Sequence record: FR725450.1
Reading direction: 5' to 3' (one strand)
DNA length: 23,750 nt
Shown here: piece after piece, positions 825 through 20,466 of the stretch
Layout of the letters: the number at the start of each line of letters is the position of its first letter
Numbering within the stretch: the first letter of the stretch is position 1
Program-made: the position numbers and the translations under genes
Notes under the pieces: generated by a model
Told to the model about the DNA's origin: nothing
What the model saw: only the letters and a program-made list of their open reading frames with translations
Database searches by the model: none

Positions 825-871
825 CAGCTTTACTTCATGGCGCTGGGATATTTATCTGCCTACTGCTATTA

Positions 872-1240
872 CTACTGCTGTTGCCTTGGCTTTTTCAGGA
901 ACATCTTGGCCACTTCGGGCAGCGCAAAGGCATAGTGTATGTGGCTGCAGTCCTTGGACTCGCACAGCCCGCAGTAGAGCGTCCTGTCCTTCAAATAGAC
1001 TTCCGCTGTCTTGCCTGCCTTTGAGTCGCGGATGAACAGTATGTTGTCCTGGTACCCTATCTTTGAGAGGTAGGGCGCGTAGCTCTGCAGGAACCTGTCG
1101 CGCTCTATGGCTTCAACGAGCACAGAGTTGATGTATTCCTTGGTATTCCAGTGCATTTTTTCTGCAGCTGACTTCATGACCTCGTACGTCTGCTTGAAGA
1201 TCTCGACCGTTATCACTTCCTTGCCGCCGCGCTTGACCAT
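872..1240 (-). CDS. Putative transcriptional repressor: N-terminal ribbon-helix-helix-like region plus C-terminal Zn finger
   Basis: Beta-strand/helix/helix pattern (KEVITVEIFKQTYEVMKSAAEKMHWNTKEYINSVLVEAIE) and YCGLCESKDCSHIH (CxxC-x4-CxH). Divergent from the viral operon. ATG 1240 is preferred over 1252 from TATA spacing. Confidence 0.6.
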   Translation of the reverse strand: MVKRGGKEVITVEIFKQTYEVMKSAAEKMHWNTKEYINSVLVEAIERDRFLQSYAPYLSKIGYQDNILFIRDSKAGKTAEVYLKDRTLYCGLCESKDCSHIHYAFALPEVAKMFLKKPRQQQ

Positions 1241-1246
1241 GTACAG

Positions 1247-1319
1247 TAACATGTTGCGACATGCTTACTTATATAATTTCTGTATGTGGTAACGTGCTAT
1301 AACATGTTACAACATATTC
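1247..1319. promoter_or_regulatory. Operator-like array of phased AACATGTT-type palindromic boxes
   Basis: TAACATGTTG 1247-1256, CGACATGCTT 1257-1266, TAACGTGCTA 1290-1299, TAACATGTTA 1300-1309 (perfect palindrome), CAACATATTC 1310-1319. Boxes are 10 bp apart within each cluster. Confidence 0.7.
1269..1282 (-). promoter_or_regulatory. Archaeal BRE-TATA promoter for the leftward repressor gene
   Basis: Minus strand reads CAGAAA-TTATATAA, which puts the TSS near 1246, just upstream of ATG 1240. Confidence 0.7.
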
Positions 1320-1320
1320 C

Positions 1321-1328
1321 TTTTAATA
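1321..1328 (+). promoter_or_regulatory. TATA box for the rightward gene
   Basis: TTTTAATA ends 25 nt before TTG 1353, consistent with a leaderless transcript. Confidence 0.55.
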
Positions 1329-1352
1329 CCAGAATGCGACCTGACGGTAGTA

Positions 1353-2245
1353 TTGTCGGCTGAAAGGATGGCTCTTGAAGAGTATGAATATGCCCTGCAG
1401 CAGGCGCGCCTTGCACACGGTGAAGTGAAAAAGTGGATAATCTATGCAGGCGAGCAGCTGGAAATAGCCGGCGTCCAGAAGGAGAAAATATCCACAAAAT
1501 TGCGAAATGACCTGCCGGGCGTCTCGGCCGATTACATAAGCCAGATCTGTAGCCAGATGGGGTGGACGGACAGGCGTTTTCCCCCGGGGTTGAGAAAACT
1601 AAGCCTGAAAATAGTTCCACTCCTTCTGCTTCTTCAGAGCAGCCGCAACAAGTCCACAATGATGATAATAACAAGGCAGCAGCGGAGGAGGAGCCTGACA
1701 AGGCAAGGTGCAGCAAGGAAAACCAGCCCTATATCGACCACCTGCAGAGAAAGATCGAGTTTCTGCAGGACGTGCAAAAGAAGCTCCGCGACAGGCCATT
1801 TCTGTCCCTGCTTGAGAAAAAGCAGTACGACGAGTACATCATGCTTGCAGACAGGGCGGAAAAGCTTGCGCGGGAGGCCTGGGATGCAAGGCAGACCATA
1901 CCTGTTGCCACGCAGTTTTACCTTGCGCAGATAGTGGCGACCTGTACAATCAAGCACGGCGCAAGCGAGTACGTTTCAAAGGTCAAGGACCTTTTTGGGC
2001 TGACGAGCAAGCAGGTCACCAAGACGCTCAAGGGAGTAGTCCGCGACGTGCACTGCCTCTACGAGCCGACAAACAGGGCAGAGGCCCTGATGGACGGCTT
2101 TTACGGCAGGCCATGCGAAAAGTGCGGCAACTGGCGGGTGAAATGGGAAAACGGCATGTGCCATTGCTTCCACTGCGACAGCGACTACCGCGCAAAAGCC
2201 GAGAGGCTGCCGCTGGCAAGGGAACAGGGCGAGTGGTCCAACTAG
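1353..2245 (+). pseudogene. Frameshift-split ~297 aa viral protein with C-terminal Zn ribbon (candidate regulator): pseudogene, sequencing error or recoded gene
   Basis: The N-terminal part (1353-~1580, MSAERMALEEYEY...GWTDRRF) looks protein-like and then becomes compositionally odd. The -1 frame (1562..2245) carries on with a natural-looking sequence ending CEKCGNWRVKWENGMCHCFHC. The junction is TTTTCCCCCGGGG (1577-1589). Confidence 0.7.
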
Positions 2246-2262
2246 CTCTTTTGGTTTGCAAA

Positions 2263-3633
2263 ATGCCATCAAAATCTGAGGTACAGGATGATAATTCTAA
2301 AATACAGGCCCTGAAGGGCAAGCCATTCTGGATCTGGAGCAAGAAAAAGCATGCAAAAAAATCCAAAGACTGCTGTTGCTTTAACCACATTGTCGGCCTG
2401 CCCGTCAAAAACGGCAGGGCCATGCCTATGTTTGACTATGAGAAAAAGATCCACGACCTGCTTGCAAAAAAGGGAAGAAAAGAGAAACAGAAGGACAAGC
2501 ACCTGTGGGTGAAAAAAGCCACAGGGCTTGGGGTGACTGAACTCCTGCTGAGGTACATGGCCTGGCTGTGCTACCGTGACGATTCGTGCAGGGGCGCGCA
2601 GATGTGCATCGTCACCGGCCCGAACAAGGAGCTTGCCAAGGGGCTCATAACCCGGCTAAAGGAGATCTGCAAGGACGTTGAAAAGCTGGAGTCAAAAGAG
2701 ACGGTGGTCGTCCTGAACGGCTGCAGGATAGAGGCTTTTCCGTCGCACCACCTCGACGCGATGCGCGCCCTTGCCAGGCCGGCGTTCATACTCCTTGACG
2801 AGGCCGACTTTTTCCCGCCAAAAGAGCAGAAAAACGCCCGCGACGTCGCAGAGCGCTACATAGCCAAGAGCGACCCGTACATAGTATTGGTGAGCACGCC
2901 CAACATGCCCGGCGGCCTGTACGAGAGCATAGAAAAGGAGGCAGAAGCGCAGTGCATCTACCACAGGCTCCACCTTGATTACAAGGCCGGGCTGAACAAG
3001 ATCTACACAAGAGCCGAGATTGAAAAGGCGCGCAAGTCGCCAAGCTTTGAAAGAGAGTATAACTTGAAGTACGGCTACGGCACAGGCAACATTTTTCCCT
3101 ACCAGCTTGTGGACGCCTGCGTCATGGAATATGACCCTGCGCTGCAAAAGGGCGCATCGGACAGGGTGCTTGCCGTGGACCCTGCCTACGGTTCCAGCAA
3201 GTTTGCCTTGGTAGGCATTGAGCGGCTGGACGAAATGCTGTACGTCAAGGAGGCAAGGCAGTACGAGCGCCCGTCTCCTGCCGCCATGCTCGAGGTGGTT
3301 GCCGAGTTTGCCCGCCAGTACCCGACTGTGCTCGTAGACTCGGCGCATCCGGGGCTAATCAGGGACTTGCAGGAAAAAGGGGTGGACGCACAGCCGGTAA
3401 ACTTTGCAAAAAATCTTGCCGACATGACAAGTGCGGCGGCGCGGGTCGTAACGGAAAAGAAGGTAAGGATACACCCTGCCTTTACGGATCTGCAGTACCA
3501 GCTAAAGGCGGCAGTGTACAATGATAAAGGCCACCCGGACAAGCGCAAACTGTCGTTTGACCTTGGCGATTGTATGTTGATGCTTGCCTATTATTGCCTC
3601 CGCCAAGATGGATTATTCATGGCCGAGATCTGA
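2263..3633 (+). CDS. terL: Terminase large subunit
   Basis: Walker A-like KKATGLGVTE, Walker B ILLDEADF, coupling motif VSTP, RNase H-fold VLAVDPAYG and distal DLGD. Start set at ATG 2263, just after the upstream stop (456 aa). Confidence 0.92.
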   Translation: MPSKSEVQDDNSKIQALKGKPFWIWSKKKHAKKSKDCCCFNHIVGLPVKNGRAMPMFDYEKKIHDLLAKKGRKEKQKDKHLWVKKATGLGVTELLLRYMAWLCYRDDSCRGAQMCIVTGPNKELAKGLITRLKEICKDVEKLESKETVVVLNGCRIEAFPSHHLDAMRALARPAFILLDEADFFPPKEQKNARDVAERYIAKSDPYIVLVSTPNMPGGLYESIEKEAEAQCIYHRLHLDYKAGLNKIYTRAEIEKARKSPSFEREYNLKYGYGTGNIFPYQLVDACVMEYDPALQKGASDRVLAVDPAYGSSKFALVGIERLDEMLYVKEARQYERPSPAAMLEVVAEFARQYPTVLVDSAHPGLIRDLQEKGVDAQPVNFAKNLADMTSAAARVVTEKKVRIHPAFTDLQYQLKAAVYNDKGHPDKRKLSFDLGDCMLMLAYYCLRQDGLFMAEI

Positions 3634-3663
3634 CCCGTTTTCTTGCATATCATGCAGGATCAA

Positions 3664-3674
3664 TAGTTCTCTTT
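3664..3674 (+). promoter_or_regulatory. Putative late-promoter motif copy
   Basis: TAGTTCTCTTT, 38 nt before ATG 3702. Confidence 0.7.
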
Positions 3675-3701
3675 CAGGACAGCCTTCTAATCCTCTCCAG
3701 C

Positions 3702-3920
3702 ATGGAAATCACGATTGAACAGCCAATATCTGTACAGCATGAAGCAGACTTGAAGGCAGCGATCCAGGACAAGCTCAAGGAGTGGGACCTGCGCGAGCCG
3801 GCCGTGTCCATCAAGGTGCGCAGCGCGCTTACGGAACAGGAAAAGACTGCGCTGCTTGTATTGATAAGGAACTTTTACGTGTCGCACGGGTATCCTAACC
3901 CTACAATGGGCACAAGCTAG
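3702..3920 (+). CDS. Hypothetical viral protein (72 aa)
   Basis: ORF MEITIEQPISV...; start chosen from motif spacing; no family recognised. Confidence 0.7.
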   Translation: MEITIEQPISVQHEADLKAAIQDKLKEWDLREPAVSIKVRSALTEQEKTALLVLIRNFYVSHGYPNPTMGTS

Positions 3921-4025
3921 CAGCGTGACAAGCATCCGTACGCCACAATAATAATAACAACCGGACGGGCCAGGGCGCTGCATCATGCACCCGATTAATC
4001 CTTAAGCGCTTGGCCGAGACCTGAT

Positions 4026-4039
4026 CAGTTCTCTTTTTT
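4026..4039 (+). promoter_or_regulatory. Putative late-promoter motif copy
   Basis: CAGTTCTCTTTTTT, 35 nt before ATG 4061. Confidence 0.75.
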
Positions 4040-4060
4040 CCGCCTGCACAACCTCAATCC

Positions 4061-4396
4061 ATGCTCAAGCTAGTGCTTACGCAAGGGTACACATTTGCCG
4101 CAAACGACTATGGCCGCCCGTACGCCTTCAGGATATACAACGAGGACGACACGCCGTTTGACGCGACCACGTACGGCCTGCCAACAATCAAGGTCTTTGG
4201 CATTTCTGGCAACGCGGCCATACAACCGCTGGCAGGCAGCTGGACCGCACAGAACCAGGGAGCAGGCGCGTTTTCCTTTGCGCAGTCAAACTGCCTGACT
4301 GCATCCGGCCCGCACTACATTGAAGTCCAGCTGGAAAAGCCCGGCGTGGCGACAAGCACCGGGCGGCGCAGGATAACAGTCACGCCAAGCCCATAG
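4061..4396 (+). CDS. Small beta-rich virion protein, BppU N-terminal (DUF2479)-like Ig fold
   Basis: Pattern LTQG...YAFRIYNEDDTPFDAT...GAFSF...GPHYIEVQL resembles BppU-type domains (recognised by eye). Confidence 0.5.
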   Translation: MLKLVLTQGYTFAANDYGRPYAFRIYNEDDTPFDATTYGLPTIKVFGISGNAAIQPLAGSWTAQNQGAGAFSFAQSNCLTASGPHYIEVQLEKPGVATSTGRRRITVTPSP

Positions 4397-4405
4397 TTCT
4401 CTTTT
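4394..4405 (+). promoter_or_regulatory. Putative late-promoter motif copy
   Basis: TAGTTCTCTTTT overlapping the upstream stop, 35 nt before GTG 4429. Confidence 0.78.
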
Positions 4406-4428
4406 CTTTTTGCCTGCATTGAAGATGC

Positions 4429-5841
4429 GTGAACCTGCGTTTCTGGCGGCCAAAGCAAGAGGTCTATGGCGTCACGCTTTCAGAGCCGAGTACTAACTCG
4501 TCGTCCCAGGTCTCTGACTATTCGCAGTACCAGCTGTACGTCAGGCCCGAGGTCGACTTTCAGACGTGCTACGAATACTACCGCACAATAGGCAAGGTGC
4601 AGAACGCCGTCGAGTCGTACGTCGCCGAGATCCTGTCGCGGGACTGGTACTTTGAGGGCGCGCAGGAAGGCGTGCAGGCGTGCGAAGAGTGGGAGGACCG
4701 GTTCAACCTCTCGCGCATCATCGAATACATTGTCCGCGACTGGCTCGTATGCGGAAATTCCATCATCGGCATCTCTGACTGGCAGCCCGTGCAAATATCG
4801 TCGATAGCAGGCGTAAGGCGCAGCCCGTACGGGATTGCAGAGCAGTTCGTGCAGGTAGTCAACGGCCGGGAGGTGCCTCTTGACGCGTCGCGCTTTATCC
4901 ACACGCAGTACATCGAGGTAAACCGCGAGGCGTGGGGCATCGGCATGTTCCACTCGCTCCTGACAACGTTTGACTATGGCAGCAGGAAAAGGTCGCTTCC
5001 GCACCTGGAGATCTACCGGCGGCAGATACAGCTTTTCTACAAGATACTGGAAAGGTACGGCTCGCCGGTGACCGTGTGGTTCTTTGAGAACGTGGCCAAG
5101 GCCGAGTTTGACCGGCAGGTCGAGGAGCTGCGGGCGCTGGAGCCGGGCGACAGGCGCATACTTTCAAAAAAGGTCGAGATAGCGACAGAGACTGTCGACG
5201 CGCGGGGCAACCTCATCAACGCGACGTCGCCGGTGATAAACCAGGAAATCGAGGCAGGGTTGCAGACGTCTGCGAACCGGCTGATAACGCAGCCGAGCGC
5301 GATGGCAGATGCCAGAATAGGATCAGAGTACGATGACTCGAAAACTACTGCGATCATGGAAAAGATCAGGCGCGTAATGAATGTCTTGATAATTCCAAAG
5401 ATAACGTTAGCAAGAGTGGAGTTCAAGTGGGGCAAAAAAGACAACTTTGAATTTGATTTCAATCAGTTATTGCAGGCCAAGAGCGCCGGATTTGTTTCTT
5501 CAGAAGAAGGCAGGGCGATCCTGCAGTCTGTTGGCTGGAAACTGGATGACAATCTTTTCAACGCACAGCAGCAATTACAAAAGCAGGAAGACTTTCGTTT
5601 TTTAAATGAAAGAGTGCGGCATATAATTTGCAGCACTCTTCAGGAATTCAATCCATACCACGATGAACGCGGCCGTTTTGCTAGTGCTACAGGCGCCACT
5701 AATTTCTCTGTCGTAGCAACAAAAAGACCAAGAAATTCAAAAGTCAACATAAATGAGCCCATTATACAATCTGAAACACCTACTGAGCAACACAGAATTA
5801 GAGCAAGAAAAAGTGATACAAAACTTTCCCAACAAGATTAG
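4429..5841 (+). CDS. Portal protein with a low-GC C-terminal extension containing an NPYHDERGRF motif
   Basis: Located between TerL and protease/MCP. Portal-like segments (VQNAVESYVAEIL, IVRDWLVCGNS, WGIGMFHSLL, EFKWG). The core ends near 5550, and codon usage turns AT-rich from ~5310. Confidence 0.88.
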   Translation: MNLRFWRPKQEVYGVTLSEPSTNSSSQVSDYSQYQLYVRPEVDFQTCYEYYRTIGKVQNAVESYVAEILSRDWYFEGAQEGVQACEEWEDRFNLSRIIEYIVRDWLVCGNSIIGISDWQPVQISSIAGVRRSPYGIAEQFVQVVNGREVPLDASRFIHTQYIEVNREAWGIGMFHSLLTTFDYGSRKRSLPHLEIYRRQIQLFYKILERYGSPVTVWFFENVAKAEFDRQVEELRALEPGDRRILSKKVEIATETVDARGNLINATSPVINQEIEAGLQTSANRLITQPSAMADARIGSEYDDSKTTAIMEKIRRVMNVLIIPKITLARVEFKWGKKDNFEFDFNQLLQAKSAGFVSSEEGRAILQSVGWKLDDNLFNAQQQLQKQEDFRFLNERVRHIICSTLQEFNPYHDERGRFASATGATNFSVVATKRPRNSKVNINEPIIQSETPTEQHRIRARKSDTKLSQQD

Positions 5842-6445
5842 TGAAGAAACTGCTACAGAGCAGATCTACAAAGCAGAAAAGATAAGAGAGCAGTTTGTAA
5901 ATTTAGCCGACAGGCAAATTGATGATATTTCCGCAGCATATCCTGATGCAGAGGTGACTGCTAGAATAAAAGATAGTTCGAGTATGGTTGAAAAAGTTTT
6001 GCGCAAGCCGAATCAATACAACGATGTATCGCAATTACAAGATACACTAGGTGTTAGAGTAGTTACTAAAGATCTGGATGAACTTGAAACGATCACATCA
6101 GATCTAACAACTAGATACGAAGTTGTATCTGAGGTTAGTTATGTTGATGTACCAAAGCTAGATGGCTATAGAGGCTATCATCTAAATGTAAAAGACAAAT
6201 ACACAGGTCTTGTGAATGAGATACAGATAAGAACAAAGAATCAAGACAAGTGGGCGGATCTTATGCACAATAGAGTTTACAAACCGTCAAAGGAATTAGA
6301 AGAGAGAGTCAGAATGAATCAAGATTCAATATACAAATATGCAAATGAACTTTCAGACTATTATTACAGACTTGATTCAGGCGAGAAAAAAGTTAAAAAA
6401 CCTGAAATATCTAAAATAATTAGAGACATACTAGGAGATGACTAA
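5753..6445 (+). CDS. RelA/SpoT-family small alarmone synthetase domain (putative toxin)
   Basis: All synthetase motifs present: RIKDSSSMVEKVLRK, LQDTLGVRVV, GYRGYH, EIQIRT..QDKWADLMHNRVYK. No hydrolase or regulatory domains. Overlaps the portal 3' end by 89 nt in the +1 frame. Confidence 0.92.
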   Translation: MSPLYNLKHLLSNTELEQEKVIQNFPNKISEETATEQIYKAEKIREQFVNLADRQIDDISAAYPDAEVTARIKDSSSMVEKVLRKPNQYNDVSQLQDTLGVRVVTKDLDELETITSDLTTRYEVVSEVSYVDVPKLDGYRGYHLNVKDKYTGLVNEIQIRTKNQDKWADLMHNRVYKPSKELEERVRMNQDSIYKYANELSDYYYRLDSGEKKVKKPEISKIIRDILGDD

Positions 6446-6656
6446 CACGGATAATTTCATCACAAAGATGTTAGATGATGTTGACAGGCATACACCCAAA
6501 ACAGGCTATAATCTTGTTGTGATAGATGATTTCGAGCCTTTTGGTGAGCAGCTCTATACCTTAGGACACTACGAGACCTATGAAGCAGCTCTTGCAGCCC
6601 AAGAACAACTTAGTGGCAACACTGTAATTTATCCACACAAGCGCGAAAAAGAATGA
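6438..6656 (+). CDS. Putative immunity/antitoxin protein (72 aa, acidic)
   Basis: Start overlaps the synthetase stop (ATGACTAA), same low-GC island. Role inferred from position only. Confidence 0.55.
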   Translation: MTNTDNFITKMLDDVDRHTPKTGYNLVVIDDFEPFGEQLYTLGHYETYEAALAAQEQLSGNTVIYPHKREKE

Positions 6657-6865
6657 TTGAAAAGCATCCTAGAAATATTATCTATGCTAATAAGCCTGAC
6701 TGCCCTGAAATAGTACGTAAAACGATCGGATGTATGGAGGAAGACTGACACATGGTTGAAGAAACTTGGCTTGACAAGAAGGGCATTTCGACACGTATGA
6801 TGAAGCTTTAGAGGCTCAGAAAAAAATACAAAGGCAATTCGGTAATTTATGGACCTGATGATTGA
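6653..6865 (+). pseudogene. Decayed paralog of the upstream immunity-like gene
   Basis: Reconstructed C-terminus GHFDTYDEALEAQKKYKGNSVIYGPDD matches GHYETYEAALAAQEQLSGNTVIYPHK of 6438..6656. It has an in-frame TGA (6746-6748), a missing base near 6780 and an extra A in the A7 tract (6820-6826). Its ATG overlaps the previous stop (ATGA). Confidence 0.7.
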
Positions 6866-6894
6866 ATAACCTTTGGCCCGTAGAACTCGTACAG

Positions 6895-6908
6895 TAGTTC
6901 TCTTTTTT
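6895..6908 (+). promoter_or_regulatory. Putative late-promoter motif copy
   Basis: TAGTTCTCTTTTTT, 34 nt before GTG 6929. Confidence 0.78.
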
Positions 6909-6928
6909 CTAGCCTCATAATCTCATGC

Positions 6929-8659: not shown

Positions 8660-8675
8660 TAGGTGAGAGACCACT

Positions 8676-8801
8676 GTGGCCGACCTCAAGTCCATCTTTG
8701 ACAAATACATCCGCGAGGGCGAGTCCGGGAGGAGCAACACCAACGAGCTCCTCAAGGCCATCGTCGACGAGATCGAGGCGCTCAAGTCAAAAAGGCGCTA
8801 A
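8676..8801 (+). CDS. Small hypothetical protein (41 aa, MADLKSIFDKYIREG...SKRR), not in the ORF track
   Basis: GTG start with SD-like GGTGA at 8662-8666. It fills the gap after MCP, and its stop begins the next motif copy. Confidence 0.7.
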   Translation: MADLKSIFDKYIREGESGRSNTNELLKAIVDEIEALKSKRR

Positions 8802-8811
8802 TTCTCTTTTT
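8799..8811 (+). promoter_or_regulatory. Putative late-promoter motif copy
   Basis: TAATTCTCTTTTT, 37 nt before ATG 8836. Confidence 0.7.
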
Positions 8812-8835
8812 CATTTTTTGTGCAAGGTTTTTTCC

Positions 8836-9195: not shown

Positions 9196-9201
9196 TTCTA
9201 T

Positions 9202-9509: not shown

Positions 9510-9533
9510 GCCCTTTTTCTGCAAGAGACTTTC

Positions 9534-12602: not shown

Positions 12603-12826
12603 GGCGTGACCTGGAAGTCTTGTACACGACAGGGGCGGTGCAGTGGTCCTGCCGCGAAAGCAAGGAGGTTTACGACATGGTGACTCTTGTCGAGATGGGC
12701 GTCTCGCTCAGGGACATTGCAGGCGACACGTACAGGGAAGACCTCAACTACCTGCTCTTTGTGCGGGACTTGAAGGCGCAGGCGTCGCGCAGCGGCCTGC
12801 TGGAAGGATTTCGGAGGGTGGGCTAG
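12536..12826 (+). CDS. gpT-like ORF, probably made as a gpGT fusion via -1 frameshift
   Basis: Overlaps the end of gpG in the -1 frame and continues PPFVRRDLEVLY... Confidence 0.7.
   Translation: MGGRKAGPRRVREEDAPGPPFVRRDLEVLYTTGAVQWSCRESKEVYDMVTLVEMGVSLRDIAGDTYREDLNYLLFVRDLKAQASRSGLLEGFRRVG
12593..12599 (+). other. -1 programmed ribosomal frameshift site C CCT TTG
   Basis: Fits X XXY YYZ in the gpG frame immediately before its TGA, at the conserved G/GT position upstream of the tape measure gene. Confidence 0.75.
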
Positions 12827-12830
12827 TCTG

Positions 12831-13208
12831 GTGCTTTCGGTCAAGGGGGTAAGCGAGGCAATGCGCATACTGGACGAAGTGTCGCGCGAGCTTGCCGGAG
12901 GAGACATTGCCGGCGCAAGCCTTGAGGCGGTAGGCAAAGCAGCGCTGGATCTTGCCAACGCCCAGACTCCTGTCGACACGGGGCTGCTTGTCTCAAACAA
13001 CAAGATGGAGATGAAAAGCAAGGCCGAGCTGGTGCTGTATAACGACACACCCTATGCAGGCCACGTCCACTATGGCACGTCAAGGATGCATCCAAGGCCG
13101 TTCTTCTACCCTGCCCTGCGCTTTCTCGAAGAGCGCTTTCCGCGGCTGTACGCGCAGGAAGTGGGCGCCTTTGTGCACAAGACGGTGTCGCTGAATTCTG
13201 CCAGGTAA
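12831..13208 (+). CDS. HK97 gp10-like tail completion/neck protein
   Basis: Signature TPVDTGLL...YAGHVHYGTSRMHPRPFFYPAL. Start is GTG 12831 or ATG 12861. Confidence 0.82.
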   Translation: MLSVKGVSEAMRILDEVSRELAGGDIAGASLEAVGKAALDLANAQTPVDTGLLVSNNKMEMKSKAELVLYNDTPYAGHVHYGTSRMHPRPFFYPALRFLEERFPRLYAQEVGAFVHKTVSLNSAR

Positions 13209-13215
13209 TTCTCTT
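13206..13215 (+). promoter_or_regulatory. Putative late-promoter motif copy
   Basis: TAATTCTCTT, 38 nt before TTG 13244. Confidence 0.55.
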
Positions 13216-13243
13216 GGCTTGCTGCGGAGCATGAACAGCAACA

Positions 13244-15028
13244 TTGAGCACATCATTTACTGCTATCCCTCTTGAATTTCTGATTAAACTCCAGGGCGAG
13301 GCGGAGGCACGGGCGCAGATACAGAGCCTCGGCGGCGCGTTTCAGAACTTTGGCAACGACGCGGCAACAGCCGCGTCAAAGGCAGACGGCGCGGCTGAAA
13401 GCAACGAAAAGGTAAAGGTGTCGTTCAAGGATACAATCCAGGCATTCAACGACGTGGCAAGCTCGGCCACGACATTGTATAATGCCTACGATGACCTGGC
13501 TGACAAGCAGCTACGGATCGAAAAGGCAGAGGCCGCTGTCACTTCGGCCGAGAACAGCCTGACCTCTGCGCGCAACAAGCTGAACGAAATGACGGCCAAG
13601 GGGATCGCGTCGGGCCCAGAGTACGAGAAGCAGCTCTCCAAAGTCGAGGGCGCGGAAGAAAGGCTGACTCTGGCCACAAAAAATGTCGAAAAGGCGCAGG
13701 GCGACATGCAGGAGGCACAGATCAAGTTCGCCCTTGACGTAGTGCCGACCGTCATATCGATGGCGTCAAGCCTGCAGATCGGCCTCCGCGGCCTCAGCGC
13801 GGCCAACTTTGGCGTGGCAACCAGCGCGCCGGCGGCCGGCGCGGGTATGCGCGGGGTTGGTACGGCCATGCGCGCCACGCTTGCGGCCATGGGGCCTGTT
13901 GGCTGGGTGCTCCTGGGCATTTCCGCTGCAATGACTATTGTCGCCACCAACGCCTTTGGCGTGCGCGACGCGATAAACGAAATGGGCAAGAGGATAGGCG
14001 ACGCAGTGCCCATACTAAAGCCATTGCTCGAAGGCTTGAACCAGCTTGCGGCAACGATATTTCCGGAATCTGCTTCCAGGGCCGAGGAGATGAACGCCCG
14101 GATGGACGCAAGTATGAAAGAAACTGCAAGTTCTACAGCCAGCTCCATCACCGAGCAGTCAAGCAGCCTGTCGGACATGAACACTGCATATGCGCAGGCG
14201 CAGGAAAGCGTCACCAAGTCGATGCAGACAATGCAGGACAGCATTACGTCGTCTTCAACCGCGATAATCAAGCAGATCGATGAGCTTGAAGCCCGCATGA
14301 GCAGCATCGGCATCTCTGGCGGAATGATGGCAAAGAGCGCCGCAGACAGCCTCGCAGGACAGATGCAGAATCCCGGGACGCAAACGCCTCCTGCCGCCAG
14401 CTCTGCTGCAACGGATCTTGCAAAACAAGAGCAGGACAAACAAGCGGCTGACCGCCTTGCAGTGCTCGACAAGCAAATATCCGACATGCGATCACAGATT
14501 GCGGCACTCGGTGGCGGCCTTGGTATTGAAAGGCTGCGCGAGCTTGGCTTTGACAGGGGAGCCGGGGGCGCGACTATGGGTAACCAGATAACCCAGTTGT
14601 TTGCACAGCTGGCACCCTTGGAGGACGAAAAAAAGGCAATTCTTGACGCGCAAGACAAGGCGGAAAAGGATGCCATTGCAGCAAAGTATGCAGAGTACGC
14701 TGACAAACTGAGGCTCCCGAAAAGCAAGATAACGAGTATGGAGCAGGGCTTGGCGGAGGGTTCAAGGCGCCAGACCGTGCTTGCGTACATGAATGCGCTT
14801 GCCGCACAGGCTGACCAACATGAGTCCAAAAATATCACACTGCAGCTGAAAGAAAACTTGAACCTGTCAACCCAAGTCCTGCCAATGACTAAAGAAGAGG
14901 CGATCCGGGGCAGGTCTGACGCTGCGATGCACCCTTGGATGTATCCTGAAACAATGATAGTCGAGATAGGGGGCGAGCCGTTTGAAGCGTATGTCAAGAG
15001 GATACCTGTGAAGGATATGCCGACATAG
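13244..15028 (+). CDS. Tape measure protein
   Basis: 594 aa Ala/Ser/Gln-rich helical protein with coiled coils and a central hydrophobic segment (MGPVGWVLLGISAAMTIV); follows the chaperones. Confidence 0.85.
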   Translation: MSTSFTAIPLEFLIKLQGEAEARAQIQSLGGAFQNFGNDAATAASKADGAAESNEKVKVSFKDTIQAFNDVASSATTLYNAYDDLADKQLRIEKAEAAVTSAENSLTSARNKLNEMTAKGIASGPEYEKQLSKVEGAEERLTLATKNVEKAQGDMQEAQIKFALDVVPTVISMASSLQIGLRGLSAANFGVATSAPAAGAGMRGVGTAMRATLAAMGPVGWVLLGISAAMTIVATNAFGVRDAINEMGKRIGDAVPILKPLLEGLNQLAATIFPESASRAEEMNARMDASMKETASSTASSITEQSSSLSDMNTAYAQAQESVTKSMQTMQDSITSSSTAIIKQIDELEARMSSIGISGGMMAKSAADSLAGQMQNPGTQTPPAASSAATDLAKQEQDKQAADRLAVLDKQISDMRSQIAALGGGLGIERLRELGFDRGAGGATMGNQITQLFAQLAPLEDEKKAILDAQDKAEKDAIAAKYAEYADKLRLPKSKITSMEQGLAEGSRRQTVLAYMNALAAQADQHESKNITLQLKENLNLSTQVLPMTKEEAIRGRSDAAMHPWMYPETMIVEIGGEPFEAYVKRIPVKDMPT

Positions 15029-15072
15029 AATCAGAATAGCTGAAATACTACCGGCAAAATAATAGAAAACCA

Positions 15073-15669
15073 GTGACTCTTCCAAAGGGGTACAGGCCGG
15101 AAAGGGTTCTCTGGCAGGACGACATCACCCAGGGCCTTTTCAGGCAAAGCGTGGTCGAGCACCGGGAAATAACCACGCTCCGGGTCATCAAGAACGAGGT
15201 CGGCATCAGGCTTGCAGACATTGACGAGATATTGGTAGTAAACACAGAGATAGAGTATGATTCGGTGTATCACGACAGGAGAAAAAACCGCGCGCTTGGC
15301 CCGGAGGGCAGATTCAACGCCAAGACACGGGTCATCGGCGACATCCAGTTTTTCCAGAACGGCAACCTTGTGCTTGTCCTCAACGATGTCTATGATCCAG
15401 AGGAAGTGGCAGGCATCGTGCGGTCTGCAAGGGCTGGAGCCGCCGAAGAACAGGCGCTGCGCAGGGTCAAAGAGGTCCTGGCCGGGCAAGCTCCTGTATC
15501 GGGCAGCAGGACTCCTGTGTCCTGCCCCTCATGTGCAGGCGAAAACCCTCCTGGATCTAATTTCTGCAACAAGTGCGGCGCCGCGCTTCCCCCTGGATGC
15601 CCAAAGTGCGGCAGCAGCAACCTGACCGGGTCTTCGTTCTGCAGCATGTGCGGCAGCCCTCTCAGCTAG
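15073..15669 (+). CDS. PH-like domain plus double zinc ribbon protein (accessory)
   Basis: C-terminal CPSC..NPPGSNFCNKCG / CPKCG...SFCSMCG (DZR); the N-terminus has a bacterial-PH-like pattern; lacks the late motif. Confidence 0.7.
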   Translation: MTLPKGYRPERVLWQDDITQGLFRQSVVEHREITTLRVIKNEVGIRLADIDEILVVNTEIEYDSVYHDRRKNRALGPEGRFNAKTRVIGDIQFFQNGNLVLVLNDVYDPEEVAGIVRSARAGAAEEQALRRVKEVLAGQAPVSGSRTPVSCPSCAGENPPGSNFCNKCGAALPPGCPKCGSSNLTGSSFCSMCGSPLS

Positions 15670-15679
15670 TTCTCATTTT
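15667..15679 (+). promoter_or_regulatory. Putative late-promoter motif copy
   Basis: TAGTTCTCATTTT, 38 nt before in-frame GTG 15705 (ATG 15684 is only 17 nt away). Confidence 0.6.
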
Positions 15680-15704
15680 CCGGATGCGCATAACGGCAGG
15701 CAGT

Positions 15705-17321
15705 GTGACCCTGCCAGATTTATTGCGTCCCCGTATCAAGATTACAAAACATAATGATCCTATCAGCGTATATTTTGATTATAATGCTTTTTCGCCTCCA
15801 AGCTCGGGGCCGCGCGTAATTGCCGTCTCGGTGGAGGACAAGGAACTCGTGCCGGCGCCCTTTACGATAGTGATAGAGGACAGCGATGGCGCGCTTGATG
15901 CAAATGTCGGAAACGGCAACAAAGTCACCATTGCCATCGGCAGCACGCAGGAGAGCCTTGCAAACTTTGTCACCGGCTACGTGCGGCAGGTGCAGGTCCA
16001 GAGGCGCGACACCGGGATAAAGGAGATAACCCTCAATGGCTTTAGCTCGGTAATCCGCCTTGACGAGCGGATCGGCAACTTTTACAGGATAGCCGCAAGG
16101 CAGGCAAACGGCGTCGATCCTGACCCTGACGACCCGAACATGAAGTGCGGCGAGATATTCCGGGACATCTTTGAAGATACAGACCACCTGCCTCTTGGCC
16201 AGCCCCTCGAGTCTTTTTCCACGGGCGGGATAAACGACATCGGCGAGCACCTTGCCTCGATAAAAGAGCCTTTCGTGGAATGGAAGCAGATAGCTGACAG
16301 AATAATGGAAGCTTCTGGCACGGTGTACGGCATCGACGCAGACGATGTCGCCTTTCTCCGCTACCCTACCCTTGCGCACAGCGGGATAACCATCCGCAGC
16401 ATGCCGACCGCTGCCGACCCTGATGAGACAACAGGCTACTTTGTCGGCTCGTGGGGCTACACCGACTCTATAAAAAAGAGCGACGGCTTTTCAAACCGCC
16501 TGTACGGGCGGGGCGGCACCCAGCTCCTGCTTGACGTCGACAGGTTTGCAGACAATGCGTCCGTCGAGTGCCATTCAAAGGACCGCGCTGTACAGTTCAC
16601 TGCGTCCGCGCCGCGCCTTGACAGCGTGTCCCTCGTCCTTTCAAAAACGGGCACGCTTGCGACAGACATCGCCGGCGAGATCCGTCTGGACGACGGAAAC
16701 AACACGCCAGGCGGCGAGGCCGTGGGGACGTTCTCGGTGTTCCGCAACCTCATAGGCGCGTCTGCCGCGGCTGTAAACCGCGTCAACATCTCTATGCACA
16801 GCAACCTGCTGCAGGTGGACAAGAAATACTGGATAGTGATCAAAAAGTCTGGCGACGCGTCAAACCATGTCAGGTGGCACCACGACAACGGCACGTCCGG
16901 CGTCAACGCCGAAAGGGCTTCGTCGACCTGGACCGTCAACACTTCAAGCTACGTTCTGGCGCACCGCACGTATTTTAGCCGGAGGGTGCTTGCCGAGGCG
17001 TCGGACCAGAAATCCATCGACAGGTATGGCCTTGTCGAGTCAGTGGTGGACGCGCCGTGGATAATCGAGGGGCAGACGATGGACGCGTACCTGACTGCGA
17101 TGCTGCAGTATTCTGCCCTGCAGCACCGCGTCTACGACGTGAAGAAGATCTACGCGCCTGCGACCCTGATAAACGCAGGCAAGCTTGCGCGGCTTGTGGA
17201 CGAGACCTCCGGCATAGACTCTGACGCGGAGATAGTGATGTCGCGCTACCGCTTCCGGGCTGACGAAAGCGGCCTTGGCACCCGCTATGCCGAGGTCCAG
17301 CTGCAAGGGTACGTGCGCTAG
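15705..17321 (+). CDS. Baseplate hub / Tal-like tail tip protein with an inserted beta-sandwich domain
   Basis: After TMP; hub-like segments (YVRQVQVQRR..ITLNG, WKQIADRIMEASG, FSNRLYGRGG, SIDRYGLVESVV). Start is 15684 or 15705. Confidence 0.65.
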   Translation: MTLPDLLRPRIKITKHNDPISVYFDYNAFSPPSSGPRVIAVSVEDKELVPAPFTIVIEDSDGALDANVGNGNKVTIAIGSTQESLANFVTGYVRQVQVQRRDTGIKEITLNGFSSVIRLDERIGNFYRIAARQANGVDPDPDDPNMKCGEIFRDIFEDTDHLPLGQPLESFSTGGINDIGEHLASIKEPFVEWKQIADRIMEASGTVYGIDADDVAFLRYPTLAHSGITIRSMPTAADPDETTGYFVGSWGYTDSIKKSDGFSNRLYGRGGTQLLLDVDRFADNASVECHSKDRAVQFTASAPRLDSVSLVLSKTGTLATDIAGEIRLDDGNNTPGGEAVGTFSVFRNLIGASAAAVNRVNISMHSNLLQVDKKYWIVIKKSGDASNHVRWHHDNGTSGVNAERASSTWTVNTSSYVLAHRTYFSRRVLAEASDQKSIDRYGLVESVVDAPWIIEGQTMDAYLTAMLQYSALQHRVYDVKKIYAPATLINAGKLARLVDETSGIDSDAEIVMSRYRFRADESGLGTRYAEVQLQGYVR

Positions 17322-17326
17322 TTAGT

Positions 17327-17338
17327 TAGTTCTCTATT
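17327..17338 (+). promoter_or_regulatory. Putative late-promoter motif copy
   Basis: TAGTTCTCTATT, 35 nt before GTG 17362. Confidence 0.75.
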
Positions 17339-17361
17339 GTCTGCCGTGCAGTACATGCGGC

Positions 17362-17925
17362 GTGTCGCACACACTTGATTACCTTGACGTAAACAGGGCC
17401 GCGCTCTTTTCCAAGTCTGATGCCAAATACGTCAGGCGCCAGCTTTTTGCGGACAGGATTGACGCGTTTAACGAGCGTCTGGAACGCGTGCTTGCCGACC
17501 AGACCGCTTATGACGACCTTGTGCACCGGCATCTTGAGCCGCTGCAGGTAAGAAGGAAGGTAGACCTTGTGGTCAACTCTGGCCTGCAGCGCCTCGCCAA
17601 GCTGGCCACGGGCAAGACCACGAGCTCGTTTACACACGTTGCCTGCGGGACAGGCACCAACGCTGAAAACGCAGGCGACACCGCGCTGCAGGCAGAGGTC
17701 CGGCGCATAGCGTGCACGGACCGCTTTGACTCGGGAACGTCAATGAAGTTCTCCGGCTTTTTCGATTCAACAACGGCGACTGGCAGCTACACGGAATTCG
17801 GGCTGTTTGACGCCTCTTCCGGGGGCAACATGTTCTCGCGCACCGTGTTCTCGCCTGCCATCAATCACGCGCAGAACTCGACCGTCTTTGTACTGACCCA
17901 GGTGGTGAGCCAGGCAGCGTCATGA
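17362..17925 (+). CDS. Tail fibre-associated / baseplate-attachment protein
   Basis: HVACGTGT...DTALQAEV.R...EFGLFDASSGGNMFSR pattern, common in tail-fibre N-terminal modules. Confidence 0.65.
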   Translation: MSHTLDYLDVNRAALFSKSDAKYVRRQLFADRIDAFNERLERVLADQTAYDDLVHRHLEPLQVRRKVDLVVNSGLQRLAKLATGKTTSSFTHVACGTGTNAENAGDTALQAEVRRIACTDRFDSGTSMKFSGFFDSTTATGSYTEFGLFDASSGGNMFSRTVFSPAINHAQNSTVFVLTQVVSQAAS

Positions 17926-18314
17926 GCTTCCGGCAATTGCGCAAGATTCCCGGCCTTGACAACATCGTCAAGGACCTTGCCGAAAAGCAGAACAGGGCGC
18001 AGGCCGAGGATGGCATAGAGGACCTCACGCTTTTCCGGCAGAACAGGGTCGACACCGACGCAATCACGTACGCGGACACTGAAAGCCACGCGGCAAACGG
18101 CGACAGGACGGATGCCGACGGCATTTCACTTGCTGACGTGGAAACAGCGCTGGCGCAAAACAGACAGCAATTTGACGCAGATGGAGATTTCTTTTGCGGG
18201 AGCGGGGCTGTCATCAACGAAACCGACAAGCCTTCTGGAGCATTTGCAGGCGGCATTGGAAACTTCAACGAGCCGGACCAACCAGCCGTCGCGGACTTCT
18301 CCGATGCAGGGTAG
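17922..18314 (+). CDS. Acidic hypothetical tail-region protein (130 aa)
   Basis: ATGA overlap with the previous gene; Asp/Ala-rich. Confidence 0.65.
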   Translation: MSFRQLRKIPGLDNIVKDLAEKQNRAQAEDGIEDLTLFRQNRVDTDAITYADTESHAANGDRTDADGISLADVETALAQNRQQFDADGDFFCGSGAVINETDKPSGAFAGGIGNFNEPDQPAVADFSDAG

Positions 18315-18329
18315 AGTGATGATGGGTAG

Positions 18330-19811
18330 ATGGCGCTAAAAAAGCTCAATGTACCAGGCGTCAATCCCGGCAGCGTGGACAAGCTGTACGGCGAGGACTG
18401 GAACCGGCTCGTCGACGCGCTGACCGGCAACGTTGCAGAAAACATAACCCTCACCGGCTTGTTCAAGGTCAGCCGTCCCAATGCTGATCTTGCTGAATTT
18501 GTGGATACGAGTGTCGGCGTCAAGCTGAAGGTGAGGCCAATAACCTCGGGCACGCGCTGGATGAGCTTTGACATTGATGTTGATGGCGGCGGCTATGTCA
18601 CGGATGTGTTGCAGCTACGAGAGCAAGAAGTCAGAATAAACCAGCAATGCAATATTTTGGCTAACGTTGAAAGTGTCTTCTCTGCCAAAAGAACGAGCAC
18701 TGGCGCCGTAGGCTATGAGTTGGGCAGCAATGATGCCACTGGCGGCAACGTCTACATCGACTTGCATACAGACAGCGGCGACGGAGACTATAGGTCAAGA
18801 ATTATCAGGAACAACGGCGCAAACGGCACTTTCGATCTTCAGCAGACCGGCACGGGCGCCATTCGGCTCATTGGCGCCAACGTCAATGTTGATAGCGGAA
18901 AACAACTCTTTCTTGATGGCGGCGGCGATACTTACCTGAGCGAAGTAGCAGCTAACCAGCTGCGTGCAACGGCAGGCGGCGCCGAGGTATGGACGGCTGT
19001 GCAAACGGCCCTTAATGTAGTGCAGGATCTCAAACTCGCCGCGGCAAAGAGGCTATACCTTGACGGTGGTGGAGACACGTACATCTATGAAAGCAGTGCA
19101 AACGTACTTGATTTTCTGGCTGGTAATATTTTGGCAATGCGTCTAACTAATGTCAGCGCGTCTTTTGGCCAAGCCCTGACAATTCAAAATGATCAGGCTG
19201 ACCTAATAAGGGCATACAGGCCAAATAACACGCCGACAACAGGCAGTGGAATTCGGTTTGACCTTAACGATTCGGCAGGGAACCAAGAAGCGTATGCATT
19301 GATATACGGTATAATTGTCACCAACACAAACGGCGCCGAGGATGGCAAACTCTCGTTTAGGACAAAGAAAGCAGGCACTATGAAGAACTGGATGGAATTG
19401 CTGCAAGATGGAACATTCAGGATCTACGAAGATGCAGGCATTAAAAGCGTCTCTTTGAGACATGACGGCAATAATGCCATTCTTGCGGTATCGTCTGGAG
19501 ATCTAGTCCTCCAACCGGGAGCTAACGTTTCAATACCTTCAACAAAGAAACTTTATCTCGACGGCGGCGGTGACACGTTCATCCATGAAGCCAGCGCCAA
19601 TATGCTAGATATTGTAAGCGGTGGGAGCGTAGGCATTTCGCTTCGTGGAACCGGCCAGGTATGGCTGAGGGCAGGAAGCGGCGCAGCCGACCCGACTGCA
19701 AGCGATATCAACGCTGGCTATGGGATGTGGTGGAAAAACACTACGGCAAACGAAGTCAGGCTGTGGTACAACGATGGCGGAACGATGAAGAAAAGCGCAG
19801 CCCTTGCCTGA
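18330..19811 (+). CDS. Tail fibre / receptor-binding protein
   Basis: 493 aa, Gly/Asn/Thr-rich beta repeats, three internal LDGGGDT repeats, at the end of the tail module. Confidence 0.78.
   Translation: MALKKLNVPGVNPGSVDKLYGEDWNRLVDALTGNVAENITLTGLFKVSRPNADLAEFVDTSVGVKLKVRPITSGTRWMSFDIDVDGGGYVTDVLQLREQEVRINQQCNILANVESVFSAKRTSTGAVGYELGSNDATGGNVYIDLHTDSGDGDYRSRIIRNNGANGTFDLQQTGTGAIRLIGANVNVDSGKQLFLDGGGDTYLSEVAANQLRATAGGAEVWTAVQTALNVVQDLKLAAAKRLYLDGGGDTYIYESSANVLDFLAGNILAMRLTNVSASFGQALTIQNDQADLIRAYRPNNTPTTGSGIRFDLNDSAGNQEAYALIYGIIVTNTNGAEDGKLSFRTKKAGTMKNWMELLQDGTFRIYEDAGIKSVSLRHDGNNAILAVSSGDLVLQPGANVSIPSTKKLYLDGGGDTFIHEASANMLDIVSGGSVGISLRGTGQVWLRAGSGAADPTASDINAGYGMWWKNTTANEVRLWYNDGGTMKKSAALA
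18899..19624 (+). repeat. Three copies of a ~27 aa protein repeat K.L.LDGGGDT(Y/F)..E..AN.L....GG
   Basis: LDGGGDT codons start at 18912, 19059 and 19557 (spacing 49 and 166 aa); synonymous sites have diverged. Confidence 0.85.
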
Positions 19812-19812
19812 A

Positions 19813-19822
19813 TAATTCTCTA
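19813..19822 (+). promoter_or_regulatory. Putative late-promoter motif copy
   Basis: TAATTCTCTA, 35 nt before ATG 19848. Confidence 0.7.
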
Positions 19823-19847
19823 CTATCTCCTTTTTTCATTATCTGCC

Positions 19848-20117
19848 ATGCCAGAATTATTAACATTTCAACAAAAAGTCGACGCCTTTGTCAATGCTGC
19901 ACGCAAGGTCGCAGACAGGGCAGAGGACTATGACCGCAAGATCCTGCGCGACGGCAATGGCAATGCAGCCAACCTTGCAGACCCTATTTTCGGCCTGTCA
20001 GAAACAGAAATCACGACCAAGCTCAAGATGCGCATAAAGCCAGAATGGGATAATTTCAGGCAGGCAGAAGCGACGATGCTCGCAGAGCTGCAAGGGATTG
20101 ACGGCGCCATAGAGTGA
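19848..20117 (+). CDS. Hypothetical helical protein (89 aa)
   Basis: ORF after the fibre gene with the motif at canonical spacing. Confidence 0.7.
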   Translation: MPELLTFQQKVDAFVNAARKVADRAEDYDRKILRDGNGNAANLADPIFGLSETEITTKLKMRIKPEWDNFRQAEATMLAELQGIDGAIE

Positions 20118-20386
20118 GGCAGATGAGCATGGAAAACCAGACAGCAAGCAACGAAAAAAACGGCGTCTCTTACAAGGACCTCTTTGAGGCCGAGCAGAAA
20201 AAGCGCCAGGAAGCAGAGAAGGACCGCGACGAGCTCTTGGAAAAATACAATTCTGTGGTGCAAGACAGGGAAAAGGTCATCGCGTCGATACAGATGGTGT
20301 CTGTCAAGGCGGTTGCGGGCATGCTGTCTGACCTGCAAAGCATCGCAAGGCAGGCGCCGCGCTTTGAGGCGATGGAGCGCGGCTAA
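20114..20386 (+). CDS. Coiled-coil hypothetical protein, last gene of the cluster
   Basis: GTGA overlap with the previous gene; heptad-like LFEAEQKKRQEAEKDRDELLEKY. Confidence 0.65.
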   Translation: MRQMSMENQTASNEKNGVSYKDLFEAEQKKRQEAEKDRDELLEKYNSVVQDREKVIASIQMVSVKAVAGMLSDLQSIARQAPRFEAMERG

Positions 20387-20466
20387 GCCTTGCCGGCACA
20401 TCTCTTTTATCAATTAGCACTTTGCATGTAATTAGAAAGCATTATTTTGTTGGTATGGGGGAGCTG

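Follow-up and report, generated by a model that had tools for sequence, protein, structure and literature searches.

The Nvie-Pro1 virion gene cluster of Nitrososphaera viennensis and its relatives at the same chromosomal locus

The stretch of DNA analyzed here (the window, 23,750 bp) is identical, base for base, to GenBank record FR725450.1, which also comprises 23,750 bp, is entitled 'Nitrososphaera phage Pro-Nvie1, complete genome' and names Candidatus Nitrososphaera sp. EN76 as the host. The window is also 100% identical, without gaps, to CP007536.1 (N. viennensis EN76; about positions 2,240,865-2,264,614), to CP103305.1 and to all overlapping bases of the ENA and Logan assemblies, and the 111-aa protein encoded at 4061-4396 was matched exactly in each of these. 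The window is thus the provirus Nvie-Pro1 of the soil ammonia-oxidizing archaeon Nitrososphaera viennensis, reportedly described by Krupovic et al. in 2011; as the record holds the same sequence, our finding is a rediscovery of an element already known. The record annotates 30 coding sequences (nvie-Pro1-1 to -30), the same gene list as found here, including the fusion of protease and major capsid protein (MCP) and the Rel_Spo-like open reading frame (ORF). Positions 1-1240 and 21126-23750 are labeled 'archaeal host sequence' in the record, leaving 1241-21125 to the element.

Readings of exactly this element as a gene transfer agent (GTA) or a killer particle have been in print since 2018 and 2019. 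Nvie-Pro1 was noted to lack an attachment (att) site and replication genes and to be possibly GTA-like (Krupovic et al., 2019; PMC6563490), and the GTA reading was accompanied by 'or killer particles' (Abby et al., 2018; PMC5797428). What we add are the limits of the insert as given by empty sites, relatives and a remnant at the same locus, estimates of selection, three frame breaks, a promoter-like motif and variable cargo slots. Comparative evidence of this kind (same-locus copies, empty sites, a decay series, the motif and an ex-fusion toxin) was unavailable in 2011-2019; it strengthens, and does not prove, the published idea of a tamed particle maker.

Nvie-Pro1 represents the late half of a siphovirus, the part for morphogenesis, with a head module of the Mu type, and lies between two host genes. 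Its features are as follows (L-numbers denote loci of relatives):

9-824, minus strand: DUF72-family gene, host flank (Pfam PF01904, 4.4e-64)
872-1252, minus strand: g126, the left-end gene (126 aa), divergent from the late genes; annotated as host sequence in the record
1353-2245, plus strand: gpX, the first late gene, before TerL, frame-broken by a 1-nt deletion near 1575
2263-3633, plus strand: large terminase TerL (phrog_2, 1.4e-22; phrog_38, 1.4e-21)
3702-3920 and 4061-4396, plus strand: two small conserved head-module genes (orthologs in L001 85% and 86% identical), each preceded by the motif discussed below
4429-5841, plus strand: Mu-type portal, 470 aa (Portal_Mu, 8.5e-8)
5753/5813-6445, plus strand: RelA_SpoT (small alarmone synthetase-like) ORF (Pfam PF04607, 3.8e-20)
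6438-6656, plus strand: 72-aa ORF directly after the RelA_SpoT ORF, ending the cassette
6929-8659, plus strand: prohead protease-MCP fusion of the HK97 type (phrog_267, 6.7e-8; 'protease/major capsid protein' in the record)
8676-9743, plus strand: four small genes of the head-completion/connector region (41, 119, 88/99 and 69 aa; orthologs in L003 and L078 63-88% identical)
9745-10810, plus strand: second low-GC cargo island, with a g162-like gene frame-shifted near 10176-10196 and ORFs of 63 and 60 aa (from two-frame matches and the GC profile)
10847-12237, plus strand: 159-aa gene and major tail (tube) protein, the tube at 11359-12237 (Phage_tube_2, 4.4e-24)
within 12237-13208, plus strand: two genes at the tail-chaperone position (121 and 75 aa; from gene calls and position)
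12831-13208, plus strand: gp10/Neck1-like tail-completion protein (phrog_5, 2e-15; 'HK97 gp10-like/Mu gpG-like' in the record)
13244-15028, plus strand: tape measure, 594 aa (from position, length and helical low-complexity sequence; also in the record annotation)
15073-15669, plus strand: double zinc-ribbon protein (DZR/Zn_Ribbon_1, 1e-11)
about 15705-17321, plus strand: baseplate or hub protein (23 relatives, 40-79% identical; ratio of nonsynonymous to synonymous substitution rates, dN/dS, 0.13-0.27)
17362-19811, plus strand: fiber-like proteins of 187, 130 and 493 aa (phrog_5417, 6.4e-39, for the 187-aa protein)
19848-21176, both strands: small right-end genes inside the insert, 89 and 90 aa (plus), 95 and 133 aa (minus)
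21372-22169, minus strand: cbiH-like tetrapyrrole methylase (TP_methylase, PF00590, 6.2e-35), host flank

TerL, a portal and an HK97-type MCP are encoded together, which places the cluster among elements derived from Caudoviricetes (the HK97-fold lineage), and with TerL, the portal core and the MCP all intact it is not a tailocin of the R or F type. TerL has a readable Walker A-like motif (KKATGLGVT), Walker B motif (ILLDEAD) and coupling motif (VSTP). For the protease-MCP fusion, precomputed matches to Phage_capsid_4 are marked faint; 67 relatives were retrieved, the top one 83% identical. The four genes of the head-completion region gave no family matches in the scans, and neither did the four right-end genes, which are missing between cbiH and DUF72 in genomes with an empty site. 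The tape measure is only 27-34% identical to its relatives. At the fiber end (17362-17925 and 18330-19811), the 187-aa protein is 79% identical to its counterpart in L078 and the 493-aa protein, which contains repeated 'LYLDGGGDT' units, only 27-29%, indicating a variable distal end.

The limits of the insert follow from genomes in which it is absent. A scan for DUF72 in species-representative genomes yielded 31 loci, and in three Nitrososphaera genomes (L016, L020 and L025) cbiH and DUF72 are about 75 bp apart; therefore both are the true flanks, and the inserted segment spans about 825-21371, or about 20.5 kb. The cbiH-like flank is 87-95% identical in five other Nitrososphaera loci. An earlier note, made from the letters of the window alone, had described a siphovirus virion set between two host flanks at 860-20400. 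The set itself is confirmed, with TerL, a Mu-type portal, protease-MCP, tube, tape measure, baseplate and fibers between DUF72 and cbiH; the location also stands, but the limits were slightly too narrow, as the insert additionally takes in g126 and two minus-strand genes in 20467-21176. Next to cbiH, and outside the insert, the right host flank encodes a small membrane protein and a two-domain multicopper oxidase (22305-23744, minus strand); multicopper oxidases often ride on thaumarchaeal mobile elements (Krupovic et al., 2019; PMC6563490).

The left-end gene g126 seems to belong to the element and not to the host, since a homolog (66% identical) adjoins a related cluster at a different chromosomal locus, L070, where the flanking genes encode isoleucyl-tRNA synthetase (IleRS), a pyrophosphatase, TrmB and a DUF192 protein. 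The gene is not present in the empty-site genomes, persists alone beside DUF72 in L011, and in many other Nitrososphaera genomes stands beside DUF72 and is followed by other genes. It evolves under constraint (dN/dS 0.09-0.16), and its tree recovers the same groups as the DUF72 tree. If g126 is indeed part of the element, this congruence would mean that the left end of the element has been at the locus since the species diverged and that most lineages then lost the virion genes. An AF2 model of g126 (pLDDT, the predicted local distance difference test score, 87) had no significant match in the PDB; a ribbon-helix-helix fold, considered for this protein, is unsupported given a good model without a structural match.

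Functions for integration and replication were looked for with Pfam, PHROGs and PADLOC in all called ORFs and in long antisense ORFs, and no recombinase, helicase, primase, polymerase or recognized small terminase (TerS) was found, nor does the window contain a tRNA gene. No direct repeat rose above shuffled controls, either in a search of the whole window or in a local alignment of 825-1600 with 20387-21371; similarity between the upstream regions of g126 and g133, considered as an att-like repeat, was not significant. Both absences agree with the earlier note, which had recognized none of these enzymes and had found no repeat at the boundaries. Within 825-21371, neither the integrase or recombinase with att repeats nor the early region for replication and lysogeny that characterize a temperate provirus was recognized. 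No integrase was seen at the visible left ends of the window, L001, L003, L017 and L070, or at the visible right ends of the window, L079, L086 and L087. The metagenome and MAG contigs of relatives (L001, L003, L070, L071 and L078) repeatedly end within the cluster, a hint of strain variation or of several related copies that interrupt assembly.

Full clusters beside DUF72 were found in L001/L002 (Logan), in L015, which is the L003 contig (Nitrososphaera sp. L.E.AR.1), and in L017 (RVF170221_bin_112). In L023 a remnant lies between cbiH and g126/DUF72 and consists of a partial TerL and a frame-shifted gpX only. The earlier note had asked whether the locus beside DUF72 and cbiH is shared across related genomes, and the answer is divided: these four loci share it, but the distribution is patchy, with the three empty sites named above. 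Two genomes (L079/L088 and L086) carry a second, more distant lineage of the family at a TFIIB-Gar1-SRP19 locus. Upstream of its portal lie at least 10 kb of additional plus-strand genes, one of them for a ParB_N protein, and this lineage may represent a more complete provirus. In IMG/VR, single-protein queries matched nothing; an alignment query found MCP relatives that are 30-58% identical, none above 58%, on contigs of up to 37 kb.

Twelve cluster genes (head, tail and baseplate) gave dN/dS values of 0.08-0.29 in comparisons with L001, L003, L078 and L070, which shows purifying selection on these modules and answers in the affirmative the selection check that the earlier note had proposed. 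For the cluster, synonymous divergence (dS) from L001 is about 0.5-0.8 and from L003 about 0.7-1.3; for the flanks DUF72 and cbiH it is 1.0-1.9. These values exclude recent transfer between these species, but they are near saturation, and a dS clock does not separate vertical from horizontal descent. The GC content at third codon positions (GC3) is similar in core genes and host flank (0.69/0.64 in the window, 0.70/0.67 in L015, 0.77/0.77 in L017). Identities of MCP and portal rank like the host tree (L001 > L015 > L017 > L070), with TerL discordant. Two features of GTAs are thus found: a chromosomal head-tail cluster unable to replicate or move itself, and a locus shared by related species in which purifying selection acts on the structural genes.

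The late genes share an 11-nt motif, TAGTTCTCTTT, of which the window holds 11 copies at no more than one mismatch (0.34 expected; none of 100 shuffles reached 11). All copies are on the plus strand between 3664 and 17337 (e.g., at 4394, 6895, 10812 and 11324), and none is in the host flanks. At least 10 late-gene start codons have the motif about 35 nt upstream, looser versions stand before other genes, and its position ahead of the portal and MCP genes is conserved in L001, L003 and L017; it is probably a shared late promoter element. One copy is inside the protease-MCP ORF (7402-7412); after another 26 nt, at the junction of the two domains, comes an in-frame ATG (7439, Met171), and an internal motif at the same offset is present in L017 and L078. 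This suggests a nested, MCP-only product besides the protease-MCP fusion.

Frame breaks occur in EN76 in gpX, at the end of the portal gene and in the second cargo island. Because six independent assemblies are identical, the breaks are genuine and sequencing error is ruled out as their source; the pieces on either side of each break were searched separately, without read-through. In gpX, the confidently modeled N-terminal helical domain (1353-1574) is in one frame, and the remaining 227 aa (1562-2245), with a C-terminal Zn ribbon, are in another. The gene is intact in L001 (289 aa) and L003 (284 aa), both of which are matched by the window in two frames, and the DNA alignment shows the missing base; the break is the same in CP007536.1, CP103305.1 and three other assemblies. 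The family comprises 161 representatives; none of 54 members scanned had a Pfam match, and an AF2 model (pLDDT 77) had no significant Foldseek match in the PDB or BFVD. From its position and architecture, gpX could be a small terminase or an activator of the late genes. As gpX is broken, the EN76 copy may be silent or may package without specificity.

The portal consists of a conserved core block, a C-terminal 'EFNPxHDxxGRFA' motif (5644-5682) and variable sequence beyond it. In EN76 the portal frame breaks off between 5796 and 5813, and the RelA_SpoT ORF overlaps the 3' end of the portal gene in another frame, so that the two are adjacent and unfused; the same split into 470-aa and 210-aa genes is called in independent assemblies that cover the region. 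The RelA_SpoT ORF matches YjbM/RelQ (1.5e-13) and FaRel2 (4e-3) in the PDB and the candidate system PDC-S33 in PADLOC (1.2e-21). Its alignment to YjbM/RelQ covers residues 64-202 and shows conserved GYRxYH and EIQIRT motifs, as in the synthetase domain of toxic small alarmone synthetases (toxSAS). In L001, a portal ORF of 556 aa runs in frame into the first half of the RelA_SpoT domain and then shifts frame; the shift in EN76 is earlier and leaves a complete stand-alone RelA_SpoT ORF. We infer from these different positions that a portal-toxin fusion existed and was broken independently in two species, and that the RelA_SpoT ORF is likely a former C-terminal cargo or toxin domain of the portal. 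The cassette (about 5700-6890) is 37% GC, with a GC3 of 0.30 versus 0.69 in core genes. The 72-aa ORF that follows has no family match in Pfam, PHROGs or PADLOC; homologs are kept in L001 and L003 (54-56% identical), and its position makes it a candidate immunity protein or antitoxin.

What follows the portal motif differs between relatives: RelA_SpoT in EN76 and L001, a g162-like domain in L003 and L079, and nothing in L078 and L070. Portal lengths range from 372 to 671 aa, and ten extended portals that were scanned had no Pfam domain, toxin domains included, in the C-terminal extension. The longest of these relatives (671 aa) has a different, unassigned extension of 200 aa without similarity to the RelA_SpoT ORF, and was rejected as an intact portal-RelA_SpoT fusion. 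The 'EFNPxHDxxGRFA' motif also heads a separate 208-aa protein in L003. This protein, a 109-aa protein of L001 and the portal C-terminus of L003 (aa 430-559) all match the second cargo island of the window in two frames. A MuF identity of the g162-like cargo domain was considered and dropped, since BLASTP showed no similarity to the MuF-like gene of L071 and Pfam gave no match. Within this island, the 63-aa ORF (10353-10544) is described in the record as a histone-like (CBF/NF-Y) DNA-binding protein; Pfam, PHROGs and PADLOC matched nothing at E <= 0.01. A Fic/DOC-family gene is present in L003 (13295-13777; also in L004 and L005), with a Pfam match of 1.4e-6 that is above the curated cut-off. 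It lies between the head-completion genes and the tail tube, the region corresponding to the second island, and represents a toxin-type cargo unlike the RelA_SpoT of EN76. In L017 a RelA_SpoT-like fragment (798-1037, minus strand; 52% identical over 80 aa) follows the MCP gene and not the portal gene, so the slot of the toxin cassette varies between copies.

We read Nvie-Pro1 as an anciently immobilized provirus lineage that some Nitrososphaera have kept for a particle function, most likely DNA packaging of the GTA or PBSX kind; among the explanations considered we place this one first, though our confidence in it stays somewhat below even. In this reading, g126 and gpX would act in late expression and packaging, as regulators or as participants, and the shared TAGTTCTCTTT motif would switch the late genes on together. 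Proheads would be assembled on the portal from the protease-MCP, possibly with a nested MCP-only product, and be filled by TerL, and tube, tape measure, baseplate and fibers would add a non-contractile tail. The portal C-terminus after the NPxHDxxGRFA motif would serve as a swappable slot for cargo domains; the RelA_SpoT domain of EN76, cut from the portal by the frame shift, would survive, if at all, as a stand-alone pair resembling a toxin-antitoxin system together with the 72-aa ORF. A wider proposal is that the Nvie-Pro1-type family consists of domesticated packaging particles, the first thaumarchaeal system resembling GTAs or PBSX, held at fixed loci since before the Nitrososphaera species diverged, with a late promoter of its own and a portal C-terminus that acts as a toxin slot (an archaeal counterpart of MuF). 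This we consider possible but doubtful.

Several observations weigh against maintenance for a particle function. No expression, particle or packaging evidence for Nvie-Pro1 was found in the literature searched, and the N. viennensis transcriptome papers and their supplements contain nothing on the locus. The three frame breaks are identical across independent assemblies, and one affects gpX, the candidate regulator or TerS. On the DUF72 tree the four loci with virion genes are scattered, the four positives requiring four changes (maximally patchy), and the closest relatives of carriers, L008 (sister of L015) and L009 (sister of L017), are without a cluster, a pattern that also fits repeated site-specific insertion followed by decay; related clusters also occur at other loci (L070; L079, L086). 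With dS near saturation, co-divergence with the host is not demonstrated. TerL is 79% identical to that of L001 and only 56% to that of L003 (dS 2.65), which points to allele replacement, so that of the congruence with the host tree, raised as a test by the earlier note, the ranking of MCP identities holds and TerL does not follow. The tail tube is 77% identical to that of L003 and 76% to that of L078 but only 26% to that of L001, whose head genes are 79-86% identical, suggesting a module swap. Such mosaic modules look like phage-type module exchange and speak against simple vertical descent. Finally, the right ends of the same-locus relatives are outside view, their contigs stopping inside the cluster, and an integrase could be there. 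A rival reading is an ordinary cryptic provirus: a temperate Nitrososphaera siphovirus would have entered this hotspot in one or more events, its early and integration region would then have been deleted, and the rest would be decaying slowly without a function for the host, the signal of selection coming mostly from its viral past. The frame breaks, the patchiness and the mosaic modules favor it, as does the graded series at the locus, from full clusters through the L023 remnant and the lone g126 of L011 to empty sites; moreover, Krupovic et al. (2019; PMC6563490) detected TerL in just five thaumarchaeal genomes, from which it follows that N. gargensis and N. evergladensis are without such a cluster. 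However, all of the roughly 15 core structural genes are intact in EN76 and at least three other species, at dS of about 0.5-1.3 and dN/dS of 0.1-0.2, which argues for selection because unselected genes should not stay open so long. In addition, every copy has the same left end, free of an early region, and the breaks fall in accessory or cargo genes, sparing the capsid, portal core, TerL and tail genes. A functionless relic is therefore a serious contender that we nevertheless consider rather unlikely. The earlier note had opposed a host-maintained element to a strain-specific wreck; the checks that it had proposed mostly favor the former, through the same-locus copies in other species and the selection on them, whereas the three breaks in EN76 and the patchiness do not.

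A virus that is still mobile, or temperate with the aid of a helper, could integrate and replicate via unrecognized small proteins (g126, gpX or the right-end genes), host enzymes or a co-resident element, which would account for one site being used repeatedly though no integrase is visible. In its favor, scattered lineages carry a cluster at this site, related clusters are at two other conserved loci, many ORFs could be assigned no function, the L088 lineage has its extra genes, and close relatives recombine. Against this, no att-like repeat was found, late genes fill nearly all of the 20.5-kb insert, the dS of the cluster between species is about as deep as that of the host and not shallower, and no MCP relative on an IMG/VR viral contig exceeds 58% identity; we regard continued mobility as improbable. 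Least probable, to a degree that we give it very little weight, is a toxin-delivery or 'killer' particle that would inject a portal-attached toxin of the RelA_SpoT type, or Fic/DOC-like cargo, into competitors, with the small downstream ORF conferring self-immunity as in bacterial MuF toxins. The killer-particle idea (Abby et al., 2018; PMC5797428) gains from the in-frame half domain of the L001 portal, from the conserved adaptor motif followed by variable C-termini in portals of 372-671 aa, from the small ORF after the toxin ORF, from Fic/DOC in L003 and from the MuF analogy. The earlier note had likewise imagined delivery of a portal-linked toxin. This part does not hold for the present locus: with RelA_SpoT out of frame with the portal in EN76, as reproduced in independent assemblies, and the domain cut mid-way at another point in L001, such a role is unsupported. 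The portals of L078 and L070 have no extension, the ten scanned extensions hold no Pfam domain, the 671-aa portal is dissimilar to RelA_SpoT and no MuF domain is present in the window, while the kept TerL points to DNA packaging rather than to delivery of protein alone. The evidence thus favors a maintained cluster, followed in order by a functionless relic, a still-mobile virus and toxin delivery.

The Nitrososphaerota are the archaea that perform much of soil nitrification, and to our knowledge no gene transfer agent or killer particle is known from them. N. viennensis EN76 is a cultured model strain, which makes the particle question directly testable, and the comparative evidence turns speculation into specific tests; the EN76 copy is perhaps not the best one to use, its first late gene being broken.

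GTAs are defined functionally by random packaging of host DNA in pieces smaller than the cluster, a small head capacity and regulation by the host, whereas Nvie-Pro1 is known from its genes alone. Like the Rhodobacter capsulatus GTA (RcGTA) of the Alphaproteobacteria, it is a chromosomal head-tail cluster that encodes neither integration nor replication functions, occupies a single locus across several related species and evolves under purifying selection. In contrast to Nvie-Pro1, which is patchy and mosaic, RcGTA occurs throughout a large clade, is syntenic and shows little mosaicism, and the two have no sequence relationship beyond shared Caudoviricetes folds. For the PBSX-type defective prophages of Bacillus, particle production, packaging of host DNA and killing have been demonstrated, and they have a repressor and a late sigma-like regulator of their own. 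Similar to Nvie-Pro1, they are immobile, consist of late genes only, keep terminase and portal, and are specific to a species group at a fixed locus; a possible killing activity would fit the toxin-like cargo. In contrast to these demonstrated particles, those of Nvie-Pro1 are putative, and g126 and gpX as its regulators are guesses.

The cargo slot recalls the MuF polymorphic toxins of temperate phages (Jamet et al., 2017; PMC5576092; see also the Apk-domain study, PMC12226406), in which a protein of the head module, located beside or at the portal, bears an exchangeable toxin domain (frequently RelA-like) at its C-terminus and is followed by a small ORF; in Nvie-Pro1 the cassette is of foreign base composition. 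Here, however, the carrier is the portal itself, beyond the NPxHDxxGRFA motif, and not a MuF domain, and a frame break interrupts the fusion in each of its two known genomes. As no window ORF matched a MuF domain (PF04233, PF06152 or related) and the toxin domain is not in the frame of its carrier, Nvie-Pro1 does not belong to the MuF polymorphic toxins as such; archaea are not mentioned in the paper on these toxins (PMC5576092).

Among archaeal elements, NCAV2-Pro1 of Nitrosocaldus likewise has a protease-MCP fusion (Krupovic et al., 2019; PMC6563490). Both NCAV2-Pro1 and CalSub-Pro of Caldiarchaeum resemble Nvie-Pro1 in being virion-only and in having neither att sites nor replication genes, but they are described as highly divergent and derived from distinct viruses (PMC6563490), and they were not among the relatives retrieved here. 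Closer counterparts are uncultivated viruses of Nitrososphaeria. In L089, the contig whose portal is assigned by NCBI to Nitrososphaeria virus YSH_1032793, about 10 kb of small plus-strand genes, some of them helix-turn-helix-like, lie upstream of that portal, and a separate MuF gene occupies the portal-toxin position; Nvie-Pro1 is without both, and such an early region, found beyond the shared late order, is therefore what it lacks. The portal of YSH_1032793 is 42% identical to that of Nvie-Pro1, and the MCPs of uncultivated viruses are 30-58% identical. These viruses (e.g., YSH_1032793 and IMG/VR contigs of 33-37 kb) have the same order of TerL, portal, protease-MCP, tube and tape measure as Nvie-Pro1.

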